Shown here: positions 1,618-62,131 of the stretch, piece by piece
Layout: every line of letters begins with the position of its first letter
How positions within the stretch are numbered: the first letter of the stretch is position 1
Assembly (NCBI GenBank): GCA_028826165.1
Contig: JAPDFW010000044.1
Coordinates: 248,001-312,000, forward strand
Source: Anaeramoeba ignava BMAN
Lineage: Eukaryota > Protista > Anaeramoebae
DNA length: 64,000 bases
Reading direction: 5' to 3'
Translations under genes and position numbers: made by a program
Notes under the pieces: model-generated
The model's database searches: none
The model's input: only the letters and a program-made list of their open reading frames with translations
What the model was told of the DNA's origin: nothing

Positions 1618-3078
1618 TTAAATGAGATAAGTCTCAAATTCATCAACTTCCCATTCATCATAAGAACCAGCTAAATAACTTCTAGCTTTATCTGTTCCAT
1701 ATTTAATTCCATTAGGTAAATTGTAACTTTCACCAAAATTTGATTGAATAGGTTGAAAATCAGAATAAAATTCTAAATCTTCTCCAAAATTTGGAGCAAA
1801 ATTTTGATCATAATAAATTGCAATTTCTTCTTTTCCTTTTTTAATTGTAAATCTTTCAGGTTTTCTATCATTTTTATCATTTCTTAATGAAAAAATAAAT
1901 GCTTTTGGATCAATAATATATCCAGAACTATTTTTTCTATCTTTTTTTCTCCATTTGGATTTCTTAGCTGTCCATCCAACTTCAGTAAATCCTCCAAAAA
2001 TAAAATTATCTTTTGTTTTGATAATAATTAATGTTTTTCCTCTATTATCACAAATATCATGCCATTTCTTAGAATCAAATCCATCTCTTTTGGCTGAAAA
2101 TCCTAATTTCATTTTTGGAAAAGAATTTATCATCTTTTATCCATTTTTTTAATTTATTGTAATGCCTAATTTCTTTAATAATTTCTGAATTAAATTTCAA
2201 TCTTGATTTGAAAATGGATGAATTTTCTTTTTAGTAAATTGATTTAATTCATCATTTTGATTTTGAAGTTTTTGGAATTGAATTAATTTTTGTGAAATTT
2301 GATTTGGAATTAAATCTTGTTTCAAAGTATCTTCAACTTCTTCTTTTGAAAAATCAATAAATCTGATTTTATCAATAATATTTGAAATTTGATCTTGTAA
2401 TTTTTCTTTTTCTTCTTTTTCAAGTTTTTGATTTTCTTTTTCTTGATTAATATTTGATTTATGTTTTCCCCATTTTATTATTGATTGGAAAAATAAAAAT
2501 TCATTTATTCGAATCTTATCATTTAATAAAATTGAATTTAAATGATTTTCTTCAAGTTCAAGAAAAAAAGGAGTTTTAATAAATTCATTAAAATTTTTTG
2601 AAATAAATTGATAAGAAGAATCTAATAATTGAGTTAAATTCATTAATTCAGATAATTTAAGGACATCAACAACAGTTTCCATTTGTGTATTCTTTTTAAT
2701 AAATTTTGAAGAAACTTCAATTAATTCATCAATTAAATATTTTGATGAAAAAATTAAAATTTGAATTGCATTTTCTAAATTAATTTTAATTTTTCCTGAA
2801 TAAAGATAATTCAAAATTGAAGATAAAATTGAATTTGAAACATCTTTTAAAATTAATTTATTTTCTTGAAATTCTTTCATTTTAGAATTAAAAAGAGATT
2901 TAAAATATTGACTTCTTGAAGAAAGAATTGATTTATGAGTTTTAAATGAAGTTTTATCTTGTTCACAAATTATTTCAAAATCAAAATAACTTTCTTCTTG
3001 ATTTTGATTTTGATTTTGATTTTGAAATAAATTTTTTAAATCGTTTGAAAGTTTTTTTAAATTTAAATAACTTTCCAT
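1618..3078 (-). CDS. BTB-BACK-TLDc protein, copy A (frameshifted near 2230 and 2115-2135)
   Basis: ORF 2197-3123 has a BTB domain (HKSILSSRSQYFKSLF) and a BACK region. ORF 1618-2133 has TLDc (SAKRDGF..WHDICDNRGKTL..IFGGFT). Likely start is MESYL at 3078. Confidence 0.8.
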
Positions 3079-3150
3079 TTGAAAAGAAAGAAAAGAAAAA
3101 AATGAAAAAAAAAAATTTTTCATTTTTTCATTTTTTCATTTTGTTATAAA

Positions 3151-4623
3151 ATGGAATCAAAAAAAACTTTTGAAAATTATTCAAAATTAAGCACAGATTT
3201 TGAAGATCTTCTCCATTCAAAAAATTACAGTGATTTTCGAATAATTGTTAAATCACAATTACAAGAAACGAAAACATTTGAATGTCATCGAGCAATATTA
3301 TCAAGTCGAAGTGATTATTTTCATGGACTTTTTCGAAGCCAAATGATAGAAGCGCAAACAGGATTCATAGAATTTGAAGATGTAATGCCTCAAGTGATGG
3401 AAAACTTACTCAGTTATATTTATTCAGGAAAACTTGAAATCAATTCAGAAAATGCAGTTGAAATTTTAGTTTTTTCATCACGTTTTTGTTTTCATGATTT
3501 ACTTGATTTTGTAACTGATTTTATCAATGATTCTTTATCTGTTGATACAGTTATTCATGTTCTTGGAGTCGCTGATTCTTTTGGAATTCAAATTATGAAG
3601 GAAAAATGCATGAAATTCATCGCAATGAATTTTTATGATATTGTTGAAAATGGAGAATTTTTCCAACTTTCTCATAATGATTTATGTGATATTCTTAAAG
3701 AAGAAATTCTTGATATTCCTGATGAATATTTTTTATTCAATTCACTTATTCGTTGGATTCAACATGAAAAAAAATTACCTGAATCAACTGGCAAACAAAT
3801 ACAAAAACAAGCGTTTCAACTTCAAGAAAAAATGAATCTTTTTATTCCGCAAATTCGCTTCAAAGACTTCACAGAAAAGCAACTGAATCAAGTTTCAAAA
3901 ACAAGTTTATTGAGACAAGAAATAATAGAAGATGTTCGTGAATTCCAAAAATTGGAAAAATCAAATCAAGTGCAAAAATTAAAAGAAATGAAGCAAAAAT
4001 TCAAGAAAGAAGAAATGTTTATTCTTTCACCACGTTCCAAATTTCCCAACAGCTCGATCATCAAGGATAGACATCACATTGCACTTTTAAGAGAATGGAT
4101 CAATGATAACCCGTTTTTTTCGAAAATGAGACTTGCATTCTCAAGTCAAAGAGACGGAGCAAAAGGGAAAATATTTCACGAGAAATGCGACAAACAAGGT
4201 CAAGCATTAGTAGTAATTCTGACTCTAGATGGATATATTTTTGGCGGATATACAAAGGTTGGATTTGATTCAGATCTTATTTGGGAATCTGAGAGATTTA
4301 AAAAGGAAGGAATGGGTCATATAAAGGATCCTGATGCTTTTTTGTTCTCATTGGCCAATCCAAAAAATTATTCACCTTTCAAAGTTTCTCCAAAAGATGA
4401 TTCACTTGATTATGCTGTTTTTTATCATTCAACAAAAGGTCCTAGTTTTGCTGGTGATTTGGAATTGAGATCAGATTTATCTAGTGGTTGGACTAATTTC
4501 GGTTGGGATTATAAATTACCTTTTCCCAGTTTGTCTCATGGTGATGAATCTAAGAAAATTTTTGCTGGATCTTATGATAGTTGGAAAGTAAAAGTTGTTG
4601 AAGTATTTTTGAAGAAATTTTAA
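3151..4623 (+). CDS. BTB-BACK-TLDc protein, intact and intronless
   Basis: BTB motifs SDFRI..CHRAILSSRSDYFHGLF, a BACK region, and TLDc FHEKCDKQG..YIFGGYT..FLFSL. Confidence 0.9.
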   Translation: MESKKTFENYSKLSTDFEDLLHSKNYSDFRIIVKSQLQETKTFECHRAILSSRSDYFHGLFRSQMIEAQTGFIEFEDVMPQVMENLLSYIYSGKLEINSENAVEILVFSSRFCFHDLLDFVTDFINDSLSVDTVIHVLGVADSFGIQIMKEKCMKFIAMNFYDIVENGEFFQLSHNDLCDILKEEILDIPDEYFLFNSLIRWIQHEKKLPESTGKQIQKQAFQLQEKMNLFIPQIRFKDFTEKQLNQVSKTSLLRQEIIEDVREFQKLEKSNQVQKLKEMKQKFKKEEMFILSPRSKFPNSSIIKDRHHIALLREWINDNPFFSKMRLAFSSQRDGAKGKIFHEKCDKQGQALVVILTLDGYIFGGYTKVGFDSDLIWESERFKKEGMGHIKDPDAFLFSLANPKNYSPFKVSPKDDSLDYAVFYHSTKGPSFAGDLELRSDLSSGWTNFGWDYKLPFPSLSHGDESKKIFAGSYDSWKVKVVEVFLKKF

Positions 4624-6225: not shown

Positions 6226-9200
6226 ATGCAAGAATATATAAAATTTTTAAAGAAAAATTCCATGTTAAAACAATCAAAAGAATTATATGAAAAATATATA
6301 AAAGGAAAACAACAACAATTTTTAAATAGTTTTGGGAAACCAAAAACAAAAGAATTACTTGAAGTAGGAGATACATGGTTTAATGCATATCCTGAAGCAA
6401 CAATATTTCCTGATGATTTATCATTTTTAGAATATCTTGGATCAGAAGAAATATGGAAATATTTTCAAAAAATAGGGATTCAAGTTATTCATACTGGACC
6501 TATTAATAAATCAGGTGGAATTCAATTTAAAAATTTTTCTCCAACTGTTGATGGATTTTTTGATAGAATTTCTTTTGATATTGCTAATGAATTTATTTCT
6601 TCTAATTCTAATTCTAATTCTAATTCTAATTCTAATTCTAATTTGAATTCTAATTTGATTGGTTCTTCTCAATTTCAAAATTTGGTCAAAACTGCTAAAA
6701 AATTTAATGGTTTAATTGCTGGAGATGTTGTTCCTGGTTAATAATTAAAATTAAAATTAATATTCATTTATAAAATTAAAATTAAAATTAAAATTAATAT
6801 TCATATTCATTTATAAAATTAATATTAAAATCAAAATTAAAATTAAAATTAAAATTAAAATTAAAATTAAAATTAAAATCAAAATTAAAATTAAAATCAA
6901 AATTAAAATTAAAATCAAAATTAAAATTAAAATTAAAATTAAAATTAAAATTAAAATTAAAATTAAAATTAAATTTAAAATTAAAATTAATATTAAATTT
7001 AAAATTAAAATTAAAATTAAAATTAATATTAAATTTAAAATTAAAATTAAAATCAAAATTAATATTAAAATTAATATTAAAATCAAAATTAATATTAATA
7101 TTAAAATTGAAATTAAAATTAAAATTTAGGTCATACTGGAAAAGGATTTGATTTTAGACTTGCAGAAAGAAATTATGGAGAATATCCTGGAATTTATATG
7201 ATGATTGAATTACCCAAAGAATATTGGGAAATTGTACCAAAAGTAGAAAATGAATGGGATTCAGCAAATTTAACAAAAACTTTAGTAAGAAAATTTATAA
7301 AAGAAGGGATAATTCCAGGTAAAAAAAAATAATAAAAAAAAGAATATTTATAAAAAGAAAAAAAAAGTGGAACAAAAAAGTTCTTAATTTTTTTTTAAAA
7401 TTTTTTTGAATTAGGTGAACTTGAAAGAGTAATGTTTTTAGATCCATCAAATCCAACAGAAGAACTTTCTGGTTGGGATGTTACTGGTGAAATTGAATGT
7501 GTGGATAATTTAAAAAGAAGATGGATATATCTTCATTATTTTAAAAGAGGTCAACCAACTGTAAATTGGTGTGATCCAACTTGTGGAGCTGAAAGAATTG
7601 TTATGGGAGATTTAACTAAAATATTATGTGAATATGGAGCTAAAATTGTTAGAATGTAATCAATATTTTTTTGAATATTGAATTGAATTGAATATTGAAT
7701 TGAATATTGAATTGAATATTGAATATTAAATATTAAATATTAAATTGAATTGAATATTGAATTGAATTGAATATTGAATATTAAATTGAATTGAATTGAA
7801 TATTGAATTGAATATTAAATATTAAATTGAATTGAATTGAATTGAATTGAATATTGAATTAAATTGAATTGAATATTGAATTGAATATTGAATTGAATAT
7901 TAAATATTAAATTGAATTAAATTGAATTAAATTGAATTAAATTGAATTGAATATTGAATTGAATATTGAATTAAATTGAATTGAATATTGAATTAAATAT
8001 TGAATTGAATTGAATTAAATATTGAATTAAATATTGAATTAAATATTGAATTAAATATTAAATTAAATTGAATTGAATATTGAATTGAATTGAATATTGA
8101 ATATTGAATATTGAATTGAATATTGAATTGAATTAAATGTTGAATATTGAATTGAATAAATATTAAATATTAAATATTATATTGAATTGAATATTGAATT
8201 AAATATTAAATATTAAATTGAATTAAATTGAATTAAATTAAATATTAAATTGAATTGAATATTAAATTGAATTAAATTGAATTAAATTGAATTAAATTGA
8301 ATTAAATTGAATTGAATATTGAATTGAATATTGAATTGAATTGAATTGAATTGAATTGAATTGAATATTGAATTGAATATTGAATTAAATTAAATCGAAT
8401 TGAATATTAAATATTGAATTGAATTGAAAATTGAATTAAATATTTAACTTAATATAGTGATGCTAATCCTTTTCTTGGATTTGAGAAAAAGGAAAATACA
8501 ACTATTGGATGGACTGAAGGACATCCTTTATCAATAATTGGAACAAATAAAATTGCTTTTATGGCAAGAAAACTTGGAGGTAAATTATTAAATTTTTTAA
8601 ATTAAAATTTAATTTAATTTAATTTAAATTCTTTTTAAATTCTTTAGGATGGACTTTTCAAGAATTAAATTTAACTTTAGAATCAATTAAAGAATTTTCT
8701 CAAAATGGACCTGATTTATCTTATGATTTTGGAACTAGAACAGCTTTAATGCATTCATTATTAACAAAATCACCAGAATTTCTTCAATTAATGTTAAAAG
8801 AGATGGTAGAAGTTTATCAAATTCCATTTCAAACATTAATACATGGGTAAATAAATTAAAATTGAAATCAAAATTAAAATTCATTTATAAAATTAAAATT
8901 CATTTATAAAATTAAAATTCATTTATAAAATTAAAATTCATTTATAAAATTAAAATCGGATAAAAAATTTAAATTAAAATTCATTTATAAAATTAAAATC
9001 GGATAAAAAATTAAAATTAAAATTAAAATTCTTTTTAAAATTCTTTTATAAAATTAAAATTCATTTATAAAATTAAAATTAGTTTACAAAATCATGATGA
9101 AATTACTTACGGTAAATAATTTCTTAAAGAGTCACAAAAAAAACAAAATATAATAAAAATAATACAAAAACATAAAACAAACAGAATTGGTTCATTTTGA

Positions 9201-10017
9201 AAAACATCCAGATCAAGAATACATTTATAAAGATCAAAAAATAACAGGAAAAGAATTAAGAAATCAAATTAGAAATGATTTTCATAAATTTTCAAGCTCA
9301 TTAAATTACATGAACAAAAACATATTCAGCGGGAATGGATTATGCACAACACTCACAGGATTAGTAGGAGCATCTTTAGGATGTAAAACATATGAAGAAA
9401 TGGTTCAAAACAAGAAAAAAATAGTTGAAGGTCATTTAATTCTTGCCATGTTCAATTCGATGATTGGAGGGGTTTTTCAGATATCAGGCTGGGATCTTAT
9501 TGGTGCTGCTCCCTTGTTTGTTAAGGAGCTTGAAGAGGATCCTCAATTCAAGGATTTTATCATGACTAAAATTCATCAAGATGGAGATTATAGATGGATC
9601 AATAGAGGAGCTTATGATTTATTGGAAAGTTCTCCAAACAAAAATTGCTCAAGATCTAATACACCTGCTGCAAAATCTTTATATGGATCTTTACCTCAAC
9701 AAGAAAAGGATGATGATTCTTTTTATTCTCAAATTAAATCTTTGCTAGAAATTCGTAGAAAATATAAAATTTTTTCTTCTGAAATTCACAAAATTTTATC
9801 ACCAAAAAATCAAGATAAAATCATTCTTATTCAATCTCGTCTTGAAAACCAAAATCAACATATTCTCTTGGCAATTAATTTTAAGGAATCAGGAAATTCT
9901 GTTAAGGAAAAGATTGATTTTGATTGGGAAATTTTTGATATTAAAATGATTTTTTCAAATCAAAAAAATACAAACAAATTTATTTGGAAACAACAAGAAA
10001 AAGACTTTAGAAATTGA
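6226..10017 (+). CDS. treS: Bacterial-type trehalose synthase / maltose alpha-D-glucosyltransferase (GH13, Pseudomonas stutzeri-type TreS), 7 exons
   Basis: Exons 6226-6736, 7130-7318, 7415-7655, 8458-8579, 8648-8846, 9083-9111 and 9185-10017 join in frame. Motifs: WFNAYP, IHTGP..SGG, PTVDGFFDRISFDI, DVVPGHTGKGFDFRLAE, YLHYFKRGQP, RIDANPFLG, FQELNL, LQNHDE, RWINRGAYDL. Confidence 0.85.
7656..8457 (+). repeat. treS intron 3 filled with (GAATT/GAATATT)n microsatellite
   Basis: Bounded by GT..AG and composed almost entirely of simple repeat. Confidence 0.9.
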
Positions 10018-10167
10018 TTTGAATCCTTGGGAATGTTCAACTTTCTTGATTACTTTTTCTCTCAAATAAATTTTTTTCATTTTTTTCATTTTTTTCATTT
10101 TTCATTTTTCATTTTTTCATTTTTTCATTTTTAAAAATTAAAATTAAAATTAAAATTAATATTAAAA

Positions 10168-13100
10168 ATGTCATTTCAAGAAAATCTTCTTTTTATTTTT
10201 TCTTCTAAAAATAATACTTCAATTGAAATTCCAAATTTAAATTCAAATTCAAATTTAATAGAAAATGAAAAACAAGAATCAATTTTTTCAAGTGATTGTT
10301 TTATAATCGAACCTTCAAATAATTCTTCAAAGATTTTACATTATATTTCTTGGTAAAAAATTATTTAATCACTTTCTATTAAAAAAATTTTTTTTTTTTT
10401 TAAAATTTTTTATTTTATAAAAAAAAATAGGATTTCTTCTTCAACACAAATTACTTTAACAGAAACATTATCAATCAATTTTAAACAGAGAAAAATTGCA
10501 AGAACACAATTTTCTTTTAATTCTTTAATTAATTTTAGAACAATTTCCTTTTCAATAAATGAAGAAAAAAATCAATTATCAATATTTTTATCAACTTTTG
10601 ATCAAATTATTTATCGAATTTTATTAACAAGAACTTTTCCGTTAGAAAAAGAAGACACTCGAGATGATCTTTTTTTATTTGCAAATGAATTCCAAACTCA
10701 ATCTCAAATTTTTAATGATTCCATTTTGGATTTGAAAGCAATAAATGTTGATGAGATTATTTTGTCAACAAAAAAAGGAAAAATTTCAAAAATTCAATAT
10801 CAAATTCAAACAGAATCAAATGAATCAACAATTTCCCTTTTTCAAGATCTAAAATCGCCTGTTTCTAATTTGGAATGTGATGGGAATCATCTTTTTATTT
10901 TTCTATTGGATGGAACACTTAAAATATATGATTTATTTACAAAATCTCAAATTCATTCAATTAACATTCCAAAAAATTTACTGAAAAAGAAAAAAAGACA
11001 AATTATTGAAGATTATCAATCAGCAATGACAAAGAATTTCAATGAAAAAAACCAATCATTCTTTATCGTTCATACAAATTTTGGAGAAGGATTTTGCTTT
11101 TATATTTTTCATTATGATGAAAAAGACAAATTGAATAATTTGGATTTAGTTCAAATCATATCATCTCCTCAAACAAAGGAAAATCAGCTTATTAATTTTC
11201 ATGTTATTGAAGGTTTGGCTAATGGAAAGAAGGAATTTGTGTTAATGTGTTTATTTAATGATTTATCCCCACAAGAATTAACTACTCAAATTGTTATCAA
11301 AACTCATATCATAAATTTAAGTCATAATTCGAATTCAATTTCCAATTTCTGGAATGAAAATTTATTAGCAGAATCAAATATCCCACAAATACCTTCTTTT
11401 GATGAAATTTCAAGTTTTGAATCCCATATTTTAGCTCGTTTATTTATTGATATTCTTTTTGAGAATGAAAATTTAATTCAAATTCTCCAAAAATCCTTGT
11501 TGATTTTTTTAGAAAAATATCAAATATTTTCAACAGAAATTTTGGATGGTCAATTATCAAAAGAAGAATTAAAACTTGAAGGAATTAAATATTTCACATC
11601 CATAATAGACAGTATTGATTCAAATCAAGTATTTGATAATCTATTTTTATTCTTTATTTATTTTTTTGTAAAATGTAATTTGATATTTAAATCTTTGTAT
11701 AATAAAAACACAATAGGATTTCTATCAAAAAAAAAGATATGATATTTGTACTGAATTAATAGAGATATATTTGGAATGTTTACAAGAAAACAATTTATCA
11801 ATTACAGTTATTCATAACAAACAAACTGGAATTACATTTCTTCATAAAGAAGTAAAATTATCTTTTTGTTTTCCTTTTGAATTGATTAATTGAAAATTTG
11901 CTTAAATTTATTCATTAATAGAGTTCTCTTTCAATATTAATATCAAACTCAAATTTGGAAATCTTTTTAAAACTGATGGAAAATCCTCGATTTGAACAAA
12001 ATTTATTTAATCAAGACCAAATCAATTTGTCAAAATTATTATTTGAAATTCCAATGATTTTCGAAGAAAATATCGAAGAAATCATGAATCAAGACTTGTT
12101 TAATTTTCAAGATCCTTTAATAAAATGTATGAATCAAATACAGGGATTTATTTATGGATCAAATACTACATCAATCACTCATGAAATGAGAGAAAAATTT
12201 AAATATAAATTTATGAAAATTTTAAATGGAATTCAAAATCCAATTCAAGTTATCCAAGATTTGTACAATAATTTTACAATTTTCCCAACAAAAACAAGCA
12301 TTGAAACAAAAAAGGAATTCAATTCACAAGAAAAAACTTCAGCTTTGGTCAAGTTTATTCTTCAAAGACAATTAGAAAATCAATGTTGGTCAGGAATTAA
12401 ATTACTTTGCTATTTAATATATTTCTTGACTTTTCTTCCCAATTTTGTAGAATTTCCAAAACAAACTCAAACAACCAAAATAATTCAAGATTGTTTTCTA
12501 AAGCCAATACCTGAACTAATTTCAAGACTTCAAAACAAATTTTTACAAATTTTGATCGAATATTTTTGGATATTTCAGTCAAATCAAGAAAAATTTAATG
12601 AAAAAAATGAGGGAAAATCAATTCTTCATCGTTGGATTGTGTTTTGGTGTGATACATATAATCAAAATTCAAATTTTCTTGATGAGGCTCAATTTAATGA
12701 ATTATGGACACAAACATTAAATAATTTAACACAAATTCACAAAGAAAATACATTCGGGAATTTTCTATTTCAAAATGACTATCCCAAACTTTCCAAGATA
12801 ATTCATTTTATTCACAAATATGAAGATGAATCTGAAGAAAATTCTCAGTTATCAACTGATTTATTATTTTTAGATGCAAATTTTTACTTGAAAAATCAAA
12901 AATATGAACAAGCATTTAGTCTATTTATGCAAATTTCTGAAGAAATGAAACAAAATGAACCCATTTCAAACATTGAAAAATTCTATCATTCAATAATACA
13001 ACAATTTCAAAAAGAAAATCAACCATTATTTGTTGAAAAAATTGCAAAAATTGCAATTATTGAATCTCAAAATCCAAAATTCCAAGAAGTTTTTAATTCA

Positions 13101-14282
13101 ATTATATTCACTTCATTGATGGGAAAAAAGAAGTATGAAGAAGCACTTGTAAATATTTTTGAGGAAAATAATACAAAAATTTTGGAAGATAAAATGATTC
13201 TTATCACAAAACAATTACTTAAAGATCAAAATTTTGATTTACTTTTCCATTTTTTGAAAACAGATCTTTTTTCAATTTTTTTAAAAGCATTAAAAATCAA
13301 TAATTCAGTTATATTTGCAAACCAAGATTTAGAAAACTTAGTTGAAGATAATTTCACTTTTAAAGCAATTATGTTTTTATATTATTGTCAATTTTATATG
13401 AAAAATTTTGAAAAAGCAGTACAAATTTTATTAAATTTTAGTTGTCGATTAGAAAAAATGATTGAAGAACAATTTTCTTTAAATGAAAAAATTAATGAAA
13501 AACAAAAATTATTATTTAAATATTTAGAAGATTTTTATGTTTTAATATTATCAACAATAGATTTAATGAAAAATAGAGAAGGAATATTATTTAAAACGAA
13601 AGATATTTCCATATTTTCTGAAATACCTTTTGAAGATTTAAATGAAAAAAATGAAAATTTGATTGAAAATTTAAATGAAAATGAAAATTTAATTGAAAAT
13701 GAAAATGAAGATTTAAAAGAATTTTTACTTAAAATTCAAAATGAATTTGTATTTGAAAATCAAAATCAAAATCAAAATCAAAATCTTAGACTTCAAATTC
13801 TAACTGATTCTGATATAAAAAAGAAATGGTTCTTCTTTAAATATCTTAACAAAATTATTGAAAACGAAAGAAATTTTAATTTAAGTTAGTTTTGTTTAAT
13901 TTTAAATTTATTTAATTTAATTTTTAAATTTATTTAATTTAATTTTAATTTAATATTTTTAGGAAATCTAATTAATCCTAAAGAAATTTTGAACATTTTA
14001 TTTCAAGAATTTAATTATAATGATGCTTTTACATTTTCATTTCAATTCAAACATTTAAAAAGAATTTTTTTGAAAAAATTTTTTGAAATTTGTAAAAAAA
14101 TTGAAATGAAAATTGAAAAAGAAAAAGAAAAAGAAGAAGAAAATAATTTTCAAGAAATTTTTGAAGAATATCAACTTTTTAAAATTGATTATTTTGATGG
14201 ATTAGAAATTGAAAGATTTTCTCATTTAAATTGTCTTCGTTTTTTTGGACAAAGATTTAAATTAACTAGAAACAAAATTTAA
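10168..14282 (+). CDS. NUP160: Large multi-exon protein, probably nucleoporin Nup160/Nup120
   Basis: About 1200 aa over ~5 exons, with a beta-rich N-terminus and helical C-terminus. The segments FTSLMGKKKYEEALVNI and LYYCQFYMKNFEKAVQILLNFSCRL resemble conserved Nup160 C-terminal motifs, as recalled. Confidence 0.55.
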
Positions 14283-14407: not shown

Positions 14408-14977
14408 ATGGTTTATTTTAAAGATTGGGAAGAATTTCATGAAGCTTCAATGAAATTATATCAATCAAATCCACAAAAAGTTTGAAAAAAAAAAAATAAA
14501 AAAAAAATAAAAAAAAATATATAAAAAATTTTTTAAAAAAATAAAACAAATAAAAGAAGATAAAAAAACTAATTTACATAAAAAATAAACAAACATAATG
14601 AATTAAAATAAATTAATGCAAAAAAAAGACACGATTTACAATGAAATATAGACATTGTGATGGAGTTTTAGTTTTAAAAGTTACAGATGATAAAACAGTT
14701 TGTTTAAAAAAACAGAAGAAAAAAAATAAAAGAAAAATAAAATAAAATAACAATTTGTTTTGTTATATTGTAATAGTGTTTAAAATATGCAGTTTCTTAT
14801 TCACAAGATTTACATGAAGTTGAAAAAATTACAAATTCACTTTTAAGATTAATGGCTAGTAAAGATATTCAAGAACCAAAAAAACCTCAACAATCAAATA
14901 ATCAACAAGATAATGAAAAGGAAAAGCCTAAAAACAATCAAAATAAACAAAATAAAAGGAAGAAACATCAAGATTAA
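14408..14977 (+). CDS. SRP9: Signal recognition particle 9 kDa subunit, 3 exons (not in the ORF track)
   Basis: Exons 14408-14479, 14629-14697 and 14777-14977 give MVYFKDWEEFHEASMKLYQSNPQK-TRFTMKYRHCDGVLVLKVTDDKT-CLKYAVSYSQDLHEVEKITNSLLRLMA..., with a K/N/Q-rich tail. Confidence 0.9.
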
Positions 14978-15113: not shown

Positions 15114-18100
15114 TCATTTTTGTTTCTTTTCTTGTTGAAAAGGTTGTAATTTTGTTAATTCTTGAATTAATTGATTTCTCATTTTTGATTGTTTATCTTT
15201 TGGTTTTTCTTTTAATTTATCTTTTGGTTTTTCTTTTAATTTTTCTTTTGGTTTTTCTTTTAATTTTTCTTTTGGTTTTTCTTTTAAAATTTTTTCATTA
15301 ACTTCTTCTAAATTTATTAATTCTTGTTTCAATTTAGTTTCTTCTTGAGATAATTTTTGAACTTCTTGTTTCAATAATTCAACTTGTTCAGATAAATCAG
15401 AACAAGTTTTACGAATTTTTTTAATTCTTTCTAATTTTTTTTCAATATTTAAAGGAGTTAAATGTTTCATATAATATCTAAAAAAAAGAAAGAAAAGAAG
15501 AATAAAAAAGAATGAATAAAAAACAAGAAAAACAAACGAAGAAATAAAAGAGGAAAAGATTAAAAGCAAAAGGGGGTATAATACCTTTCCCAAAAACTTA
15601 AATGCCTCATTGAAGTACTTGGTCTAATTGGACCATCAATTTTTTTATAAAGTTCATTTACATATAATTGCTTATTATTATTAACAAAAGTCCATAAAGA
15701 ATAAGTATTTTTCCTCAAATTTGAAGAATCTCTTTCAGAATCGCAATTAAACATAAAAGTTCCAAAACGCAATGAAAACAAATGCTCCAAAATTGTGAGT
15801 AACAAAACCTCATTAAATTCAAAAGCGTTAGGAAGTTGATGTAAGCATTGATAGACACAATCAATCCATTGAAGAAATATTGGTGATCTTTGTGTGTCTG
15901 AGTATTTTTTGTCTGCATATCCATGTCTCTGTGCGAATTTATGTCCAAATTGAATCCAATCTTTTTCAATCAATACTTCAAATCCTTCCAATGTTCTATA
16001 ATAAGGATCTTCAAGTAATTGTGTCAATCCACTCACTTGCGAAGTGTTATGCACAATTATTCTTCCAATTCCTGCTTGGAAGTGCTGGTTATCTGTTGAC
16101 ACGTCATAAACATATCCTTTGCATTTTCCAATTATTTTTTTGCTTTTCAAAATGTTTTCTTTTTCAATTGATTTTTTTCCTTTTTCAATTATTGAAATCC
16201 AGTATTTTTTTCTTGCTTCATCATATCCTATTTCCATTTCATTTTCTCTTGTATTTCTTAATAAAATGAAAATTCCTGATAATAATATTTGACTTTCTGA
16301 AAAAATATTCACTGAGTTTCTTGAGTTTAATTGATATAATTGAGCTTTGAAATTTTGTGTTGAAATGGAATCAAAAAATCCTTTCAAAAATTCTTTTTGA
16401 TTATCATTATTTGTGTTTAAAATGAAATTTGGAATTTTCTTATTATAATCTTTATCAAAAAAATGATATTTGAAAAATTGAATGAATTCTTGATTTTGAT
16501 TTTCTAAAGAAAGAGAAAAATTGCCATCATTTTGTTTTTCAATTATAAAATTTAAAGAGATTAAATTTGATTCATTTTGAGTTGTTTTTTGGGAATTGGT
16601 TTTAATTAAACATTGCAAAACGAGTTTAGCTTGGATTAAAACATTTTCATTTTGATGAGAAATGGAAATGTTTTTGTTTTGCCAATCTAAGATTCCAGAA
16701 GCAACAAACAAACCAAAAAACCAAGCAATTTTCTTAGAGAAAAATATGGGTTGATTTTGTTGAAAAACTTGAATATAATCAAATTGATGCAAATTAGATA
16801 ATTTTGGAGGATCATTATGAAGTAATTGATCTCCAACTTCAACATTTTCAACTTTAACGCATTTTCCTGAAGGATTTAATAAAGAATGGCCTGTTGTTAC
16901 ATTAACACAAGCTGTTTTTGTTGAAACCATAACAATTTCTTCAGAAGTGAAATGGCGAATAATTTGATTCACATTTGAAAATCCATTTTCAGTCCAAACT
17001 TGCAAATTATTTAAAGGTTTGTTAGTTTCTTTTTGATGAATTTTTTCATCCAAAATCCATTTGCATTCATGATCATATAATTCATCAATTCGTGAAATGA
17101 ATATTTCCTTATTTTGTGAGTTCCGACAAATTAAAGGGGTTTCTCCAGTAACGCTTCTATCCCATCCATCAGAACAATGGATAAGAACAGATTGATTACT
17201 TTCTAAATAATCAGCGACTTTAATTGAAGAAAAGAGGATTTTTTGGATATAATGAAGCCAATTTGTTTCATCTAATAAACTGAACCATTTTTTGTCATCA
17301 TTTTCTGTTGTTGATGTTGTTTGAATGCATAAATTTCTTAATTTTGTTAAACTATCTCTCATTGAGTGAATATTATCAATTCCAAGAAATTCCAATTTAC
17401 AATTTGGATAATTTTCCGATTTTTCATATCCACCTCCTTTTGCAATATTTCCTATTGCGTTTGCTTTTGGTCTACAATCTATAATTTTAAGTTTTCTGTT
17501 TTTAGGGTTTGTTTGACCGATTGTTGATAAGAAATTTTCATCAACTTCTGATCTTGATCTTGAAATACCTTTTAAATTAAATTTTGTATTATAAATTTTT
17601 ATAAATAAATTTTGATAAATCTTATAAATAAATTTTGTATTATAAATTTTGTATTATAAATTTTATAAATAAATTTTGTTAAATAAATTTTGTATTATAA
17701 ATTTTGTATTATAAATTTTGATAAATTAAATAAATTTTATAAATAAATTTTATAAATAAATTTTATAAATAAATTTTATAAATAAATTTTATAAATAAAT
17801 TTTGTAAATAAATTTTATAAATAAATTTTGATACCAATTTTGGGTTGAGATGAACGTGTTATTGTTGAATAATTTATTGGATGTTTCCATGTTAAAGAAG
17901 GTAATCTATTTTTTGTTCTAAATTCTGCAATTTTCTTTAATTTTTGTTCTTCTACTCCTTGAGGAAAAACAAGAATTTTTGGATAACTTGGACATAAACT
18001 ATAATTTTTATTAATATAAGAAACTTGCCAATGTTGAGGTGATAATTCTAAATTTGAATATAAATAAAAATCAAAATGATTTTTCGTTTTGTTTTGTTTT

Positions 18101-20645
18101 GTTTTTGTTTTTTTTTTGAGAATTTTTTGTTGAAATTTTAAATGAATTAAAATTTAATCCAAATATTTTATACTCATTCTTGAAAATTCTTTTTCAATTT
18201 GATAAATTTCCCATCCAAAATCAATTTTTTCTTCATTTTTATGAATCCATGCAAATGTATTTTCAATATTTCCTGGAAATGCAACTGATGATAAAGTGTC
18301 TAAAAAGGATTTATAATTTTGTCTTTGATAAGGAAGATAGAATTTTGTTGTACGGAATTCTTTATGGAATATTTCAAATCCATAAGAAAATTTTCCTGAT
18401 AATTTAAAAGGATAATTTAATTGAATTTTGATTTTGATTTAAATATTTGATTTAAATATTAATTTAAATATTAATTTAAATATTTAATTTAAATATTAAT
18501 TTAAATATTTGATTTAAATATTGATTTAAATATTGATTTAAATATTTGATTTAAATATTAATTTAAATATTTGATTTAAATATTAGATTTAAATATTTGA
18601 TTTTGATTTAAATATTTGATTTAAATATTAATTTAAATATTAATTTAAATATTTGATTTAAATATTGATTTAAATATTAATTTAAATATTAATTTAAATA
18701 TTGATTTAAATATTTGATTTAAATATTAATTTAAATATTTGATTTAAATATTAATTTAAATATTAATTTAAATATTGATTTAAATATTTAATTTAAATAT
18801 TAATTTAAATATTTCATTTAATTGAATTTTGAAAAAAGAATTACCTCTGCTTTTAATTCCACCAAATGGTTGAATTCTATGAATTTGTCCTAAAGGAATT
18901 TGTGGAAAAGCTTCTTTTGGTTCAAAATTCTAAAAAAAAGAAAAAAAAATATTTAAAATTTTTTTGATCAAAATAAATAAATTTTAAATTAAATTTTGAT
19001 TTTATAATAATTTATATACTAAAGCACTTAAATCATCTGGAACAAAATATAATTTATAATTTGTTAATCTAACATGTCCAGGAATTGCTGATGTTCTTAA
19101 AACATCTTGTGGAAACAAATAAAATACTTTAGGAGCTAAAGACATTGCTTTTTCATTTTCAAGTAATTCTGGTTCTTGAAATTTAAATTTATATCCTGTT
19201 GATTTTTCAGTCTATATCAATTTAAAATTATTATTAAAATTATTATTAAAATTATTATTAAAATTATTATTAAATTTATTATTAAATTTATTATTAAAAT
19301 TATTATTAAAATTATTATTAAATTTATTATTAAAATTATTATTAAATTTATTATTAAATTTATTATTAAAATGATTATTAAATTTATTATTAAAATTATT
19401 ATTAAATTTATTATTAAAATTATTATTAAAATTATTATTAAATTTATTATTAAAATTATTATTAAAATTTATTATTAAAATTATTTATTATTAAATTTAT
19501 TATTAAATTATTATTAAAATTTATTATTAAAATTATTATTAAAATTATTATTAAAATTATTATTAAAATTATTATTAAAATTATTATTAAATTTATTATT
19601 AAATTTATTATTAAAATTATTATTAAAATTATTATTAAAATTATTATTAAAATTATTATTAAAATTATTATTAAAATTATTATTAAAATTATTATTAAAA
19701 TTGATTATTAAATTTATTATTAAATTTATTAATAAATTTATTATTAAAATTATTATTAAAATTATTATTAAAATTTATTATTAAAATTTATTATTAAAAT
19801 TATTATTAAAATTATTATTTAAATTTATTATTAAATTTATTATTAAAATTATTATTAAATTTATTATTAAAATTATTATTAAATTTATTATTAAAAATTA
19901 TTATTAAATTTATTATTAAAATTATTATTAAAATTATTATTAAAATTATTATTAAATTTATTATTAAAATTATTATTAAAATTATAATTAAATTTATTAT
20001 TAAAATTATTATTAAAATTATTATTAAAATTATTATTAAATAACTCACCTTTGTATTAATAAAGGTTGGAAGAAAATCCGTCTATAAAGAAAATGAAAAA
20101 AATTGATTAAAAAATTTGTAATTAAAAAAGAATCCAATTTCGATAATATAAAAGGTCATTAAAACAATTTTTTGAATTTGTTTTTCAGAATTTTAAATTG
20201 AATTTTAAATAATAAATAAATAAGAAAAATTTAAGTAAACTTTGAAAAGAGAAAATTACAGAAAGATCATCAAGATCCATTTTAAGAGGAACTTGACCAA
20301 AAACTTGAGAAATAAGTTCATCTTCTTTTCTTTCAGTATCCTGAATTTGTTGAAAATTTGGTAATGATTCATCATTAGAAATTACAATTTGGTTATCATT
20401 GTTTTCATCATCAGAATCTTTTAAGTTTTTTTCTTTTGTTATTTTTATTGCTTGATTTTTTATTGAAGTTAAAAATTCAAATTTAGCATCAAATAACTCT
20501 TCATCAACATCTGATCCTTCATCAGATTTTTTATCAATAAGAGTTTGCTGAAATTTTTGGATGTTTCTTTAGGTCTTGGTGGAATGGGCGGAGCTCGTCT
20601 TGGACGCTCTGTGTTTTGATTTTGAGGTGAAGAATTTTGACTCAT
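15114..20645 (-). CDS. Myotubularin-family phosphoinositide 3-phosphatase (GRAM, PTP-like, coiled coil), intein-containing precursor
   Basis: Multi-exon gene. Motifs: GRAM (GHVRLTNYKLYF), LCPSYP, FRTKNRLP, IIDCRPKANA..GGGYE, FLGIDNIHSMRDSL, VLIHCSDGWDR|T, DPYYRTLEGF..IEKDW..FGHKF, SPIFLQWIDCV. The intein-bearing exon is 17568-15585 and the last exon 15477-15114. There is a probable homopolymer frameshift near 20555. Confidence 0.92.
16046..17155 (-). mobile_element. Intein (370 aa, Ser1...His-Asn, +1 Thr) with a degenerate LAGLIDADG homing endonuclease
   Basis: In-frame 1110-nt insertion between R and T of CSDGWDRT. Block A SVTGETPLICR, block B VNVTTGHSLL (TxxH), block C WFFGLFVASG, block E EFLKGFFDS, block F GYVYDVSTDNQHFQAG, block G IIVHN/T. 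Confidence 0.95.
19225..20040. repeat. Myotubularin intron filled with a 12-mer (AAAATTATTATT)n
   Basis: Directly visible. Confidence 0.9.
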
Positions 20646-26161: not shown

Positions 26162-29149
26162 ATGTTAAAATATATTACAGGAGGAAATATAAATTCAAAT
26201 TTAATATTTTCACAAAATTCTAAGTAAAATTAAAAAAATAAAAAATTTAATAAAAATTAAATTAAATTTAAAAATAAAATAGATTGATCTTTGTTTCTAT
26301 TAATAATCAAATATCAATTATAAATACAAACACTGGAGAAACTGTTTCACAACTTAAAGGACATACAGGTTTTATTACTGATATTAAACTTAATCCTTTA
26401 AATTCAAATGAAATATTTTCTTCTTCTATTGATGGAACTATTAGAAGATGGAACATTAATGAAGCCAGTTTAATAAATGTATTTATTTAGAAAATTTTCA
26501 GAAGAAAAAATATTCTTAAAGAATATTTGAGGATTAGAAGATTAAAAATCTTTTATTAAGAATATTTTTTAAATTTATAATATTTTATAATGTTTTTTAA
26601 ATTTATAATATTTTTTAATGTTTTTTATAAAAAATAGACTTATTACTTAAACAAACCAATCATTTCATTCACTCTTAATAAAGCTTTTCCTGATGATTTA
26701 TTCTTAATTTTATATTCAATCCAAAACCAAAAAGAAAACAAACCAAAAATTCCTCAAAATTCAATTCCTGAAAAATTAACGCAATTTGGAAATAATTTAA
26801 TAGAAGAAATCCAAAATTCAATGGATTTAAAAAATGAAAAGGAAATAAATCAAAGCAATTCTATTGTTAATATAAATGTTGTTTTATTCAATACAGAAAA
26901 TTTCAAAATTACAAAAAGTTTACAAAGAAAAAAAATCAATTTTCCAAAATTTCAAGAATCATTTCGAAAAATCAAATTGGAAATTGATAAACAAGGAAAA
27001 ATACTTGCATTTTCATTTCTTTTTCAAGTTGAACTGATTGATTTAGAAACAAATTCAAGAGCAATTTTAAAACATCGAACACAAATATTATCAATCAATT
27101 TCCATCCTTTTATTGTTGGAAAAATAGCAACAGGAAGTAAAAACGGACACATTAGAATTTGGGAAAATCCGTTCCAAATTCAACAATCAAAAAATCCAAC
27201 GGAAAATCCAAAAAAATACAAAAATGAATTGGAGGAAAAAAACAAATACCAAAAATTGCATTGGCATGCTCACGATGTATCTTCTTTAATGTTCACAGAG
27301 GATGGGAAATATTTGTTGTCTGGAGGAGAAGAATCCGTTCTTGTAATTTGGCAATTAGAAACTGGCAAAAAAAACTTTATTCCAAGAATTGGAACAAGTG
27401 GAATAAAATACTTGAATATTTCCCCAAATTCAACTTTTTACTCAGTTGTCAATAATGACAATACAATTTGGTTGATTAAAGCAAGAGAAAGTTCTTTGCA
27501 TTTATCCATCTCCAAATTTAAAGCGCCTTCGCGATTACTAAATCATCAAAAATACAAATTGGCTATTGAGCCAAGAAATTATAATTTGGTTTCAAATTTC
27601 TCTCAAAATACTCTTCATTTTTATGATATATTTAGTCAAAAACAATCAATGGATCTTCGTGTTTCCTTTCGCAATATCATTTCACGAGGAACAACTGAAA
27701 TCAACCCAAATTTTGTGGAATTTTTCTCTTTTAGTTTTGATGGCAATCATTTGGCAACTATTGATTTTCAACACAAAAAAAGCGAATCAAAAAATCAACA
27801 TCAAGAAGTTTATTTGAAATTTTGGGAGTTTCAGAATCATAAATATGTTTTAAACACACAATTTGATTCTCCACATTCAGGTGCAATCACATCTATTCTT
27901 TTCCATCCCGAAATGTATATTTGTGTAACAACATCAGATGATTCAACTTTTAAAATTTGGAAAATCAAAGATGAAAAGGATCAAACCAAAACAAATGTTC
28001 TCAATTATTCATGGGTTTGTAGAAGCACTGGCTATTATAATAATAAAACCCCAATCATTGGTTCATCTTTTTCTGGAGATGGATCTGTTCTTGGTTTATT
28101 GCATCATCGTTTAATCTCTTTATGGAATCCTTTTTCAAATTCTCTTCTTTCTTCTATTGCAATTCCTCATCCAGATGAAACGTTTATAGAATTTAATTTT
28201 GTTATGAAAATCAATCCAAATCATCTTATAGCTTCAACAAGAAATCATGTTTATGTATTTGATTTATTATCAACAAGTTTATTGTGGTCAATTTCTTTGG
28301 ATGTTGAGAAAATATTTTTTGATAATTTTTCAAATAAATTTATTATAGTTACAAAAAATCGATTTGAAAATGAATTTGAAAATGAAAAACAAAATCAAAA
28401 TCAAAATTTAAATTTAAATGAAAATCAAAATCAAAATCAAAATCAAAATCAAAATCAAAATCCAATTTTAAATCAAAATCAAATCCAATATTTAGTCTTA
28501 TTTAAATCTCGAAATCAAAAACCTCACAAATTTTTAAAATTGGAAAATATTGTTGTTGAAAAAATTATTTTTTTCCCTTCAAATTCAAATTCAAATTCAA
28601 ATTCAAATTCAAATCCAAATTCAAATTCAAATCCAAATTTAAATCCAAATTATAAAAAAGAAAGTTCAAGAATTCTCATTTATGATTCACAAAATAGAAT
28701 TCATGAATTTGGACAAAGATTATCACAAGAAATTTCAAAAGAAGAATTCAAAAAAAATCAAAAAAACGAAACAATTAAATCGATACAAAAAAACATTTTT
28801 AAAAAAACAAAAAAATGATCAAGAAAATTTTGAAGAAGAAAAAAAACCTTCTTTATTAAATTTCAATCAACAAGAATTTAAATTTGATTTAGAACAAGAA
28901 ACAATTCCTCCAATTTCTCAATGGTCTGATGTCTTTATAAATGATTTATTGAAACCAAAATCAAAAAAAGAATTTAAATCAAAAAATCAAAAAAGAAATC
29001 AAAAAAATAAATTAGAAACTTCTTCAAATCAAATGGAAATTGAAAATGATAAAAATGATTTAGAAAATGTTGATGTTTCTTTTGATAAAAAACAAATTAA
29101 AGAAGATTATTCAAATATTTTAGATATTTTTAAAGAGAATGATTTTTAG
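26162..29149 (+). CDS. WDR75: WD40 protein WDR75/UTP17 (SSU processome t-UTP)
   Basis: Signature LHWHAHDVSSLMFTEDGKYLLSGGEESVLVIWQL..FIPRIG and LKFWEF..YVLNTQFDSPH. There are two short 5' introns and a frameshift in an A-run near 28800-28815. Confidence 0.85.
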
Positions 29150-29282: not shown

Positions 29283-31073
29283 TTAAAAAATTAAACATTT
29301 TTCTTTCTCTTTTTGAATATTAAATTTGTTAATTAATAAATCAAATAAATTTGGATTTGTTTGATTTAATTGAAAATAATCAATTCCTCTTTTAATTTCA
29401 TTAATTATTTCTTGTGTAATTTGAATTCCTTCTTTAATTTGATTTGAATAAATCCAATATTCAAATATTTGAAATGATTCATTACTTAATTCACTATAAT
29501 CTGTAACTTTATTAGAAGTATCTTCAGTTACAGATAAAAACATTCCTCGATATAATTCACTTCTCATTATTAATATTAATTTAGGAAATTTATATTGTTT
29601 TTCTTTTCTTTCAATTATAAAATCTTTTTCATTTTCATTTTCATTTAAATAAATTCTTTTCATTGTTTCTTCTATTTTTTCATTTGAATTTATAATTTCT
29701 TTAATTTCAGAATATAATATTGGATTTATTATTCTGTTTGAATAAATCATTTCAAATATTTGATTGGATTCTTTAATTGATTTTTTTGAAATAATTTCTT
29801 TGAAGTTTTTCATTTCATTTTGATTTTGATTTAATCTATATTTCAATATTAATTTATGAGCTTCAATTATTTCTCCATTTTTGGTTTTAAATGAAATATC
29901 ACAAAATTCTTTTCTTTCAAATAGTTTTATCAAATCTTCTTCAAGATTGGAAAAAGAATGAGGAGAATAATAAATAAATGAATTGGAATTCCCACAAAGA
30001 ACATGATAATTGGAAATATCTTCATTAAATCTTAATTCAGGAAGTTCAATTTGAATTGGAATTAATTGAGATTTTCTATCTCCAGTTCCTAATTGGCCAT
30101 AATCATTGTATCCAAATACTATTAATTTTGAATTGGAAGTTAAAATCAAATTATGAAATATTCCAACAGAAAAATCAATAATATTATCATTTTCAAATAA
30201 AGATGATTTGATTTCAGTAAATTCATAAGTATTTTGATTTTTGCCAAGTCCATTAAATTGATAATCTCCACATGAATAAAGTTTTCTTTTTGGATTTTGT
30301 TTTTGATTTTCAATCAACATTATTGAATGATAAGATCCACATTGAATATCAATTATTTTACCTTTTGGAATATTTTGGATTTTGGTTAATTTTTCGATTT
30401 CTGTTTCTTCTTTTCTTGATTTTCCTAATCCAAGTTGGTTATTACCATTATTTCCACATCCAAATAATTCTTGATTTGAATTTAAAAGAAAAACATGATA
30501 TGAAGAATTTCCTGAAAATATTTTAGAAACATTTTTCATCATTAAAATTGGGTTTTCTGTTTCTTGAAGTGTTTCAGAATCAAAACCAAGTTGACTAAAT
30601 TGATTTGAACCAATTCCATAAACATTATGATTTGAAGTTAATAAGTAAATTGAATTAGCTCCAGAAACAATATCTTTAATTATTCTATCATTTGTATCTT
30701 CAATTAATGATGAAATATTGATAAATTCATTTGGATTTTCTGAATTAATATCTTCTCCTTTAGCAAATACATTTTCTTCTTTTGTTAAAATAGTTTCATT
30801 TCCATCACCAACATTTACTTTTTGAATATTTTTAATTTGGATTTTTTCAGGATTTTGTTTTGAATCTTTTTCATTTAAATATTCTATTGCTTTTCCATTT
30901 TTAAAAAGGAAAATTGTTGAAGATTCACCTGATGAAATTTGTTTAATTTGTTTTTCATTTTCATTTTCATTTTCATTTTCAAATTTAAATTGAATTGGTT
31001 TTGTTATTTTTTTTGGTTCATTTTTTAAAAGAATTGGATCTTGATTTTGACCAAAAAATATAATTACATTCAT
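29283..31073 (-). CDS. RCC1-repeat + tandem BTB protein with C-terminal CaaX (copy 1)
   Basis: RCC1 repeats (GIGSNQFSQLG, FGYNDYGQLGTGD), BTB-like CDISFKT..HKLIL and KDFII..KLILIMRSELYRGMF, ending KEKCLIF*. Confidence 0.88.
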   Translation of the reverse strand: MNVIIFFGQNQDPILLKNEPKKITKPIQFKFENENENENEKQIKQISSGESSTIFLFKNGKAIEYLNEKDSKQNPEKIQIKNIQKVNVGDGNETILTKEENVFAKGEDINSENPNEFINISSLIEDTNDRIIKDIVSGANSIYLLTSNHNVYGIGSNQFSQLGFDSETLQETENPILMMKNVSKIFSGNSSYHVFLLNSNQELFGCGNNGNNQLGLGKSRKEETEIEKLTKIQNIPKGKIIDIQCGSYHSIMLIENQKQNPKRKLYSCGDYQFNGLGKNQNTYEFTEIKSSLFENDNIIDFSVGIFHNLILTSNSKLIVFGYNDYGQLGTGDRKSQLIPIQIELPELRFNEDISNYHVLCGNSNSFIYYSPHSFSNLEEDLIKLFERKEFCDISFKTKNGEIIEAHKLILKYRLNQNQNEMKNFKEIISKKSIKESNQIFEMIYSNRIINPILYSEIKEIINSNEKIEETMKRIYLNENENEKDFIIERKEKQYKFPKLILIMRSELYRGMFLSVTEDTSNKVTDYSELSNESFQIFEYWIYSNQIKEGIQITQEIINEIKRGIDYFQLNQTNPNLFDLLINKFNIQKEKEKCLIF

Positions 31074-31353
31074 TTTTTGAAAAGAAAAAAATGAAAAAAT
31101 GAAAAATGAATTTTGAATTTTAATTTTAATTTTAATTTTGAATTTTTAATTTTAATTTTAATTTTGATTTTAATTTTTAATTTTAATTTTAATTTTTAAT
31201 TTTGATTTTAATTTTAATTTTAATTTTAATTTTAATTTTAATTTTAATTTTAATTTTAATTTTAATTTTAATTTTAATTTTAATTTTAATTTTAATTTTA
31301 ATTTTAATTTTAATTTTGATTTTTAATTGAAAATAAATCAATTCCTTTGATTT

Positions 31354-33040: not shown

Positions 33041-33281
33041 TTTTAAAAAGAAAAAAAATGAAAAAATGAAAAAATGAATTTTTGATTTTAATTTTAATTT
33101 TGATTTTAATTTTAATTTTAATTTTAATTTTAATTTTAATTTTAATTTTAATTTTAATTTTAATTTTAATTTTAATTTTAATTTTAATTTTAATTTTAAT
33201 TTTAATTTTAATTTTAATTTTAATTTTAATTTTAATTTTTAATTTTAATTTTGAATTTTAATTTCATTAATAATTTCTTTT

Positions 33282-35123: not shown

Positions 35124-35298
35124 TTTTGAAAAGAAAAAAATGAAAAAATGATTTTTAATTTTAATTTTAATTTTAATTTTAATTTTAATTTTGATTTTAA
35201 TTTTAATTTTGATTTTAATTTTAATTTTAATTTTAATTTTAATTTTAATTTTAATTTTAATTTTGATTTTGAATTTTAATTTCATTAATAATTTCTTT

Positions 35299-37154: not shown

Positions 37155-37192
37155 TTCAAAAAAGAAAAAAAATGAAAAAAATATCATTTTAT

Positions 37193-43597: not shown

Positions 43598-43663
43598 GAA
43601 TTTCAATCAAAAATCAATAAAATCCAAATCAAATTTTTTCCTTTTTATAATCTTTATTAATTT

Positions 43664-45956: not shown

Positions 45957-46071
45957 TTTTAAAAAGAAAATGAAAAAATGAAAAAATGAAAAAATGAAAA
46001 AATGAAAAATGAAAAATGAAAAAAATTGGAATTTAAATTAATTTTGATTGTTCCACTTTTTTTTTTTTTGT

Positions 46072-59506: not shown

Positions 59507-59626
59507 TTCAATTCATTTCAACTTTTTTTTTAATTCAATTCAAAATTCAAAAATTAAAATGAAAAATTTTTAATTTTCATTTTTTCATTTATTCATTCTT
59601 CTTTTCAATATAAAAAAAATTAAAAA

Positions 59627-62074: not shown

Positions 62075-62131
62075 TTTTAATTTTTAATTTTAATTTTAAT
62101 TTTAATTTTAATTTTAATTTTAATTTTAATT

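Follow-up and report, generated by a model that had tools for sequence, protein, structure and literature searches.

The myotubularin gene KAJ5078849.1 of Anaeramoeba ignava BMAN, a nuclear gene, contains a canonical and correctly delimited class-1 intein in the loop that carries the catalytic cysteine. The gene is located on the minus strand of the window, which denotes the whole stretch of 64,000 nucleotides that was analysed, and its DNA at 15114-20645 is identical to the deposited gene on contig JAPDFW010000044.1 of assembly GCA_028826165.1. It is very likely that this insert is an immobilised selfish class-1 intein of the giant-virus type, which entered once, was multiplied by two gene duplications and is kept by obligatory splicing. 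As such, it is an ordinary class-1 intein in a genus known for its intein abundance. Gallot-Lavallee et al. (2023, PMC10710043) counted 103 inteins in A. ignava BMAN, assigned them to 49 protein groups and reported 18 host groups as new, and splicing was shown for three Anaeramoeba inteins (PMC10710043). A preliminary description of the window had pointed to Anaeramoeba as the intein-rich exception among eukaryotes, which proved apt as the source genome is that of A. ignava itself.

Position and splicing motifs of the insert

On the minus strand, the insert comprises 370 stop-free codons from S-V-T-G to I-V-H-N and is located inside a single open frame (15560-17395) and a single exon (17568-15585). 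The codons before it encode HCSDGWDR and those after it encode TSQVSGLTQLLEDPYYRT, with the same frame throughout. The Pfam Myotub-related match breaks at model position 245/246 on the N-terminal side and restarts at 246 on the C-terminal side, and an alignment with 18 intein-free myotubularins places the insert exactly between DR and T. The preliminary description had claimed an in-frame insertion of 370 AA between the Arg and the Thr, whose removal restores a contiguous phosphatase. The insertion is confirmed by the frame, the domain break and the alignment, and the restored enzyme by the two Pfam halves, which meet at 245/246 and leave HCSDGWDRT intact. Its boundaries were exact, but it omitted the strand and missed a degenerate LAGLIDADG domain nested in the insert.

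All class-1 splicing residues are present, namely Ser1, T87/H90, Asp351, His369, Asn370 and Thr+1, and could be located as claimed before (Table 1). They are invariant across the three known myotubularin inteins and their relatives. Gly89 (16889-16891), which precedes the block B His, is a Gly in all three myotubularin inteins compared to an Asp in 77 of 82 relatives. This shared change may be an adaptation of splicing to the new extein.

A spliceosomal intron was rejected as a candidate since the insert ends in AGC...AAC and not in GT(GC)-AG, and sliding the junction by its one ambiguous base results in GC...CA. The GC content of the three codon positions (0.36/0.25/0.17) is of the type found in coding DNA. 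These ends, the open frame and the composition, together with the intein fold described below and the occurrence of three diverged copies that share the insertion codon but each lie on a different contig, refute the reading of the segment as an intron or an assembly artefact, the probability of which is negligible.

Table 1. Features of the myotubularin gene and its intein in the window; intein residues are counted from Ser1
Feature	Position	Strand	Remarks
Myotubularin gene KAJ5078849.1, 1137-aa precursor	15114..20645	-	9 exons, 8 GT-AG introns
Exons 1-5	20645-20498, 20432-20260, 20081-20049, 19211-19020, 18929-18845	-	
Exons 6-9	18395-18174, 18047-17835, 17568-15585, 15477-15114	-	
Exon 8	15585..17568	-	N-extein end, entire intein and most of the C-extein
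Catalytic loop HCSDGWDR	17156..17179	-	Last eight N-extein residues; Cys nucleophile at -7, phosphate-binding Arg at -1 (roles: PMC2927912)
Class-1 intein, 370 aa	16046..17155	-	Precursor residues 494-863
N-terminal Hint (splicing) region	16811..17155	-	Residues 1-115, boundary approximate; Ser1 at 17153-17155
Block B, T87-T-G-H90	16886..16897	-	Mostly T-E-D-H in relatives
Degenerate two-motif LAGLIDADG domain (predicted fold)	16166..16810	-	Residues about 116-330
First LAGLIDADG helix (block C)	16694..16723	-	Acidic position is Ser153; Asp/Glu in 67/82 relatives
Second LAGLIDADG helix (block E)	16361..16390	-	Acidic position is Ile264; Asp in 64/82 relatives
C-terminal Hint region	16046..16165	-	Residues 331-370; Asp351 (block F) at 16103-16105, His369 and Asn370 at 16046-16051
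Thr+1, first C-extein residue	16043..16045	-	Native Thr of HCSDGWDRT and second-step splicing nucleophile
C-extein, remainder of the phosphatase domain	15585..16045	-	Pfam PF06602 positions 246-351

For the host gene, separate searches were run with the exons of the window and with the insert, and full-length comparisons used the database protein records. The PF06602 phosphatase domain is complete, with 422 bits over its two halves. Once the insert is discounted, the protein has the HCSDGWDRT signature by which active myotubularins are defined; in the VHCSDGWDRT motif of active members, the Arg binds the substrate phosphate (PMC2927912, bioRxiv 10.1101/2022.07.27.501705). A Pfam GRAM match is absent from KAJ5078849.1 and present in its paralogues KAJ5075926.1 and KAJ5072830.1. 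The 5' end of the gene model (20260-20645, minus strand) is doubtful because the first intron measures just 65 nt and is crossed by another open frame (20188-20568). A mis-called intron or a homopolymer frameshift may be the cause. Introns of the gene (17570-17829, 18437-18821, 19222-20040) consist of near-pure A+T tandem repeats with a period of 12-13 nt and up to 67 copies. The region encoding the C-terminal coiled coil contains four tandem Lys/Glu-rich repeats of eight residues with a 24-nt unit (15191-15287, minus strand).

Elsewhere in the window, a cluster of at least six genes with RCC1 repeats and BTB domains, plus an ankyrin-BTB gene, covers 29283-37196 and 57290-63894. Two genes of this cluster have frame breaks (35299-36171 with 36192-37196, and the gene upstream of 32523) and are either pseudogenes or the result of assembly frameshifts. 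Divergent BTB-BACK and BTB-BACK-TLDc genes form a small cluster at 2197-4623 and neighbouring positions. Housekeeping neighbours at 9187-14282, 14408-14977, 26821-28818 and 42572-47646 comprise Nup160-like, SRP9, CAF1 deadenylase, G-alpha/Arf, WDR75, D123/ATP-grasp, PRMT5, short-chain dehydrogenase, glycosyltransferase 61 and PATROL1-like genes.

Fold, outside relatives and decay of the endonuclease

Predicted with AlphaFold from an alignment with 85 relatives, the insert reached a pLDDT of 91.4 and a pTM of 0.90; the single-sequence prediction was uninformative (pLDDT 32). According to this model, the insert consists of a Hint domain in which a two-motif LAGLIDADG domain is nested. The 16 top Foldseek matches were all inteins with an endonuclease, led by TliVMA (E-value 8e-18), PhoVMA, PI-PkoII, PI-PfuI and PI-SceI, and these leaders were followed by mini-inteins and I-DmoI. 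A profile built solely on 82 non-myotubularin inteins scored 240 bits on the insert, and all seven matches of its sequence search against the PDB were inteins, which excludes a chance resemblance. The Pfam and NCBIfam intein models are weak for the insert, as Pfam Intein_splicing did not match the window intein and TIGR01443 barely reached its cut-off. The Hint and LAGLIDADG match, which had been proposed earlier as a check, was found on the level of the fold by AlphaFold and Foldseek, although the Pfam intein model misses the window intein. A homologue search with the insert alone returned no relatives since these are embedded in much longer precursors, and a length-free search yielded 1569 of them. 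Within the window, a profile search found no second intein of the same family.

Among the best 150 of the 1569 relatives, 147 are located in non-myotubularins, nearly all in motifs of PolB (YGD|TDS, SAN|SMY) or topoisomerase II (DQD|TDG, EGD|SA). The nearest of these are giant-virus PolB and topoisomerase II inteins with an identity of about 30% over the full length, including those of Cafeteria roenbergensis virus PolB and Pithovirus PolB. In total, 562 viral stretches match, many of them from giant-virus MAGs, and one relative is encoded on a gene-dense metagenome contig of 814 kb. The inteins of Nucleocytoviricota PolB (YGD|TDS, i.e. pol-c, and SAN|SMY) and topoisomerase II share Ser1, the His-Asn end, Thr+1 and the Hint and LAGLIDADG layout with the window intein. 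They differ in an unrelated host protein and site, in dissimilar junction DNA and in the two acidic endonuclease residues, which are both kept in most relatives (60/82). Ser/Asn/Thr chemistry at YGD|TDS has been described for the Mimivirus PolB intein (PMC549080). Membership of the pol-c allele was rejected because the window site is DGWDR|T in a myotubularin and not YGD|TDS in PolB; the inteins are related, not allelic. The best structural matches, the archaeal PhoVMA and TliVMA inteins (PDB 7QST, 7QSS, 7QSU; PMC8966425), share only 14-17% identity with the window intein and differ from it by Cys1 and a different host.

Based on these sequence relationships, the donor was probably a virus. 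For Anaeramoeba inteins, links to viruses and non-allelic spread have also been reported (PMC10710043). Alternatively, the intein could derive from a cellular allele that has since been lost or from another Anaeramoeba intein that is missing from the sample, as a long branch separates the myotubularin inteins from their relatives and no sister group is resolved. The junction DNA of the myotubularin site showed no microhomology to 72 viral sites beyond a matched null, so that a non-allelic jump would be either old or independent of site similarity.

Several observations concern the wider family and site. Many viral-type PolB proteins (P0004-P0020 and others) hold two related inteins at SAN|SMY and YGD|TDS, and topoisomerase II homologues hold related inteins at EGD|SA and DQD|TDG; this family is promiscuous in its choice of site. 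Distant relatives were found ahead of a GT-B glycosyltransferase domain in a protein of 643 AA with a truncated N-terminus (P0139) and, with a Gly at the Ser1 position, in a protein of 244 AA (P0106). None of the 25 metagenome matches to a DNA pattern of the loop followed by the intein start was another intein-bearing myotubularin, in a search that needs the exact motif and covers eukaryotes poorly. An unrelated myotubularin of an environmental eukaryote (L024, Ga0302136_1016706, 95-120) has an apparent spliceosomal intron that begins inside the Arg codon of DGWDR with a GTGA repeat, one base away from the intein site.

The two-motif LAGLIDADG fold is present in the predicted structure, as reflected by the matches to I-DmoI, PI-PfuI and PI-SceI. 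Nevertheless, both catalytic acidic positions are non-acidic in all three myotubularin inteins. The Hint regions of the three copies are 49-61% identical (dN 0.32-0.49), and their conservation matches that of the exteins, compared to an identity of 26-30% (dN 0.73-0.76) for the endonuclease regions. For motif-intact relatives at matched Hint identity, the endonuclease identity amounts to 44 +/- 7% (568 non-independent pairs); only 0.7% of these pairs fall to 30% or below, and the myotubularin pairs have 27%. The endonuclease domain is decaying faster than the splicing domain. Judging from its residues, the endonuclease is presumably dead and the element unable to home. Two intein-free A. ignava paralogues, KAJ5069810.1 and KAJ5072830.1, provide nearly identical, intron-free DNA at their empty sites and yet are uninvaded. 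Blocking of these sites by an intron was rejected as the nearest intron is located 401 nt upstream. PhoVMA retains an intact endonuclease fold without the aspartates and was inactive when tested, and splicing domains can come to need the endonuclease as a scaffold (PMC8966425). By analogy, such a need could be the reason why each of the three copies has kept its full length.

Probable history of the invasion among the paralogues

The nearest relatives of the window intein are located at the same DR|T site of the A. ignava proteins KAJ5068930.1 (41%) and KAJ5075926.1 (40%), which are both named 'intein-containing myotubularin-related precursor' in GenBank and UniProt. The site is therefore already known, since these names show that the genome depositors recognised the intein in two paralogues, and the novelty implied by the preliminary description is not supported. 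The window gene itself is named 'myotubularin-related protein [Anaeramoeba ignava]' in GenBank, without an intein flag. Myotubularin is not named in the main text of PMC10710043. However, the second search round of that survey used Anaeramoeba inteins as BLASTp queries and should catch a copy 40% identical to two recognised inteins, so the window intein is presumably listed there. It resembles the set of that survey in the species, its length (370 aa vs a mean of 367.6), the viral links and the insertion into a conserved motif.

The three intein carriers are located on three contigs and have inteins of 370, 382 and 372 aa. In addition to the species, the site and the intein family (40-41%), the window gene shares the lost endonuclease residues and the intron positions with KAJ5068930.1 and KAJ5075926.1. 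The loop of KAJ5068930.1 (P0002, L003:6001-11406), by contrast, is dead: it reads QSANGRDR instead of HCSDGWDR and lacks the catalytic His and Cys, which are essential in myotubularins (PMC2927912), while its intein and splicing residues are intact. This pattern suggests that splicing is selected for because the protein has a non-catalytic function as an adaptor. In KAJ5069810.1 and KAJ5072830.1, HCSDGWDRT is uninterrupted, and the eight A. flamelloides sequences that were retrieved all fall in intein-free clusters. The list of A. ignava paralogues derives from a word-limited search and comprises at least five myotubularins, of which at least two are intein-free.

An extein tree was calculated for 21 myotubularins with the insert columns dropped and 16 redundant or long-branch rows left out. 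The five A. ignava myotubularins form one clade (98/96), in which the three carriers (96/91) and the two empty genes (100/98) each form a clade of their own; a first quick tree with 37 rows gave the same grouping. A grouping of the window gene with the empty paralogues was rejected by AU tests (p 0.0007 and 0.011). The window extein has the shortest branch (0.22) among the A. ignava myotubularins. A quick tree of the inteins also places the three carriers in one clade (SH-aLRT 100), whose branch is long and whose sister and inner order are not resolved. Intein dS is similar to extein dS, with values near saturation in this AT-rich DNA.

The simplest reading of these sequence data would be that the intein entered the A. 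ignava lineage once and that its host gene later duplicated twice. Alternatively, each of the three paralogues could have acquired its intein in a separate event, through homing from one paralogue to another at a time when the endonuclease still worked. Transfer between paralogues has been reported in Anaeramoeba (PMC10710043), the DNA site is conserved among the paralogues, and the intein tree does not resolve in which order the three copies branched. This is nevertheless unlikely, as carriers and empty paralogues form distinct extein clades, the empty sites match the target as well as those of the carriers do without a blocking intron, and the intein dS is no lower than that of the exteins.

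Splicing, function and significance

Under the favoured explanation, an intein of the PolB YGD|TDS and topoisomerase II family would have jumped non-allelically into one myotubularin gene of the A. ignava lineage, where the invariant Thr of the phosphatase would have been taken over as the +1 nucleophile. The host gene would then have duplicated twice, resulting in three intein-bearing paralogues, and the endonuclease would have lost its catalytic residues and thus the ability to home. This is the probable order of events. Class-1 splicing proceeds by formation of an ester at Ser1, transfer to Thr+1, Asn cyclisation and an O-N shift. The motifs of the window intein suggest that splicing occurs, most likely constitutively. 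The precursor would be translated whole, Ser1 would make the N-O shift to an ester with Arg-1, and the ester would pass to Thr+1. Asn370 would cyclise, aided by His369, TxxH and Asp351, and an O-N shift would then form the native Arg-Thr bond, joining the exteins and restoring HCSDGWDRT. Since a domain of 370 residues sits at the Arg-Thr bond beside the phosphate-binding Arg, the precursor is predicted to be catalytically inactive until this domain is removed. The catalytic loop would be destroyed if the insert stayed unspliced or were deleted imprecisely, and selection would thereby keep splicing. Dependence of the host on splicing is the usual reason for the persistence of inteins at conserved sites. 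Such a dependence calls for no regulatory role to account for the persistence of this intein.

The preliminary description had gone further and stated that PI3P and PI(3,5)P2 phosphatase activity depends strictly on splicing. For this polypeptide, the position of the insert makes such a dependence very probable. The 3-phosphatase activity of the cell does not hinge strictly on splicing, given at least two intact intein-free paralogues (KAJ5069810.1 and KAJ5072830.1), provided that these are expressed.

It had also been proposed that the intein could act as a conditional switch on endomembrane lipid signalling. Splicing would then be gated by a cue such as redox state, oxygen, metal, temperature or membrane binding, which would in turn control this phosphatase and PI3P signalling at endomembranes. 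With an intein in the catalytic loop, activity would indeed be gated by any delay in splicing, and a full-length intein is retained in three diverged paralogues. Cys10 is common to the three inteins, the catalytic Cys is located at -7, and prokaryotes are known to have conditionally splicing inteins (cited in PMC10710043). However, the need to splice fully explains the retention, and Cys10 also occurs in 32 of 82 relatives. Disulfide traps at Cys1 are known in other inteins but are inapplicable to the Ser1 and Thr+1 nucleophiles found here. The intein-free A. ignava paralogues with an intact active site, the intein-free A. flamelloides homologues and the equally intact intein in the paralogue without catalytic Cys or His also speak against a switch, and so does the number of inteins in the host genome, which indicates permissive spread. 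No sequence feature hinting at a trigger of conditional splicing was found in the window intein, and nothing found otherwise points to it. The switch is therefore improbable. There is likewise little chance of the more elaborate scenario in which the intein has been co-opted to gate three A. ignava myotubularins (two active ones and a dead adaptor) in response to a cue, with unspliced precursor accumulating under some condition until splicing releases lipid-phosphatase activity at the endosome or symbiosome. If true, a cue-gated myotubularin intein would be the first case of a signalling enzyme in eukaryotes that is regulated by an intein.

Conversely, the intein might no longer splice, and the gene might make an inactive precursor, a pseudo-phosphatase covered by the other paralogues. 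The window intein escapes the Pfam intein model and deviates from the family consensus at E5, A82, N85 and G89, and redundant paralogues exist. This is very unlikely, though, with every catalytic splicing residue intact, a Hint domain under purifying selection and a window extein that combines the shortest A. ignava branch with a perfect catalytic loop.

The importance of the presumably obligatorily spliced and immobilised intein described here is modest and lies in a clean case of an intein in the CX5R loop of a cysteine phosphatase. The text of the 2018 census of eukaryotes does not mention this host class (PMC5784728), and none of the papers found by our literature search discusses an intein in a CX5R loop. 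To the two flagged copies, this work adds a third with an unflagged database name, evidence for one invasion with two duplications and a predicted dead endonuclease, and a connection with the polymerase inteins of giant viruses, even though the sites are unrelated. A Ser1/Thr+1 intein that follows an Arg at -1 may be of some use for protein engineering if it splices well. With an intact intein in a catalytically dead protein, KAJ5068930.1 offers a natural control for what keeps an intein splicing once the chemistry of its host enzyme is gone.
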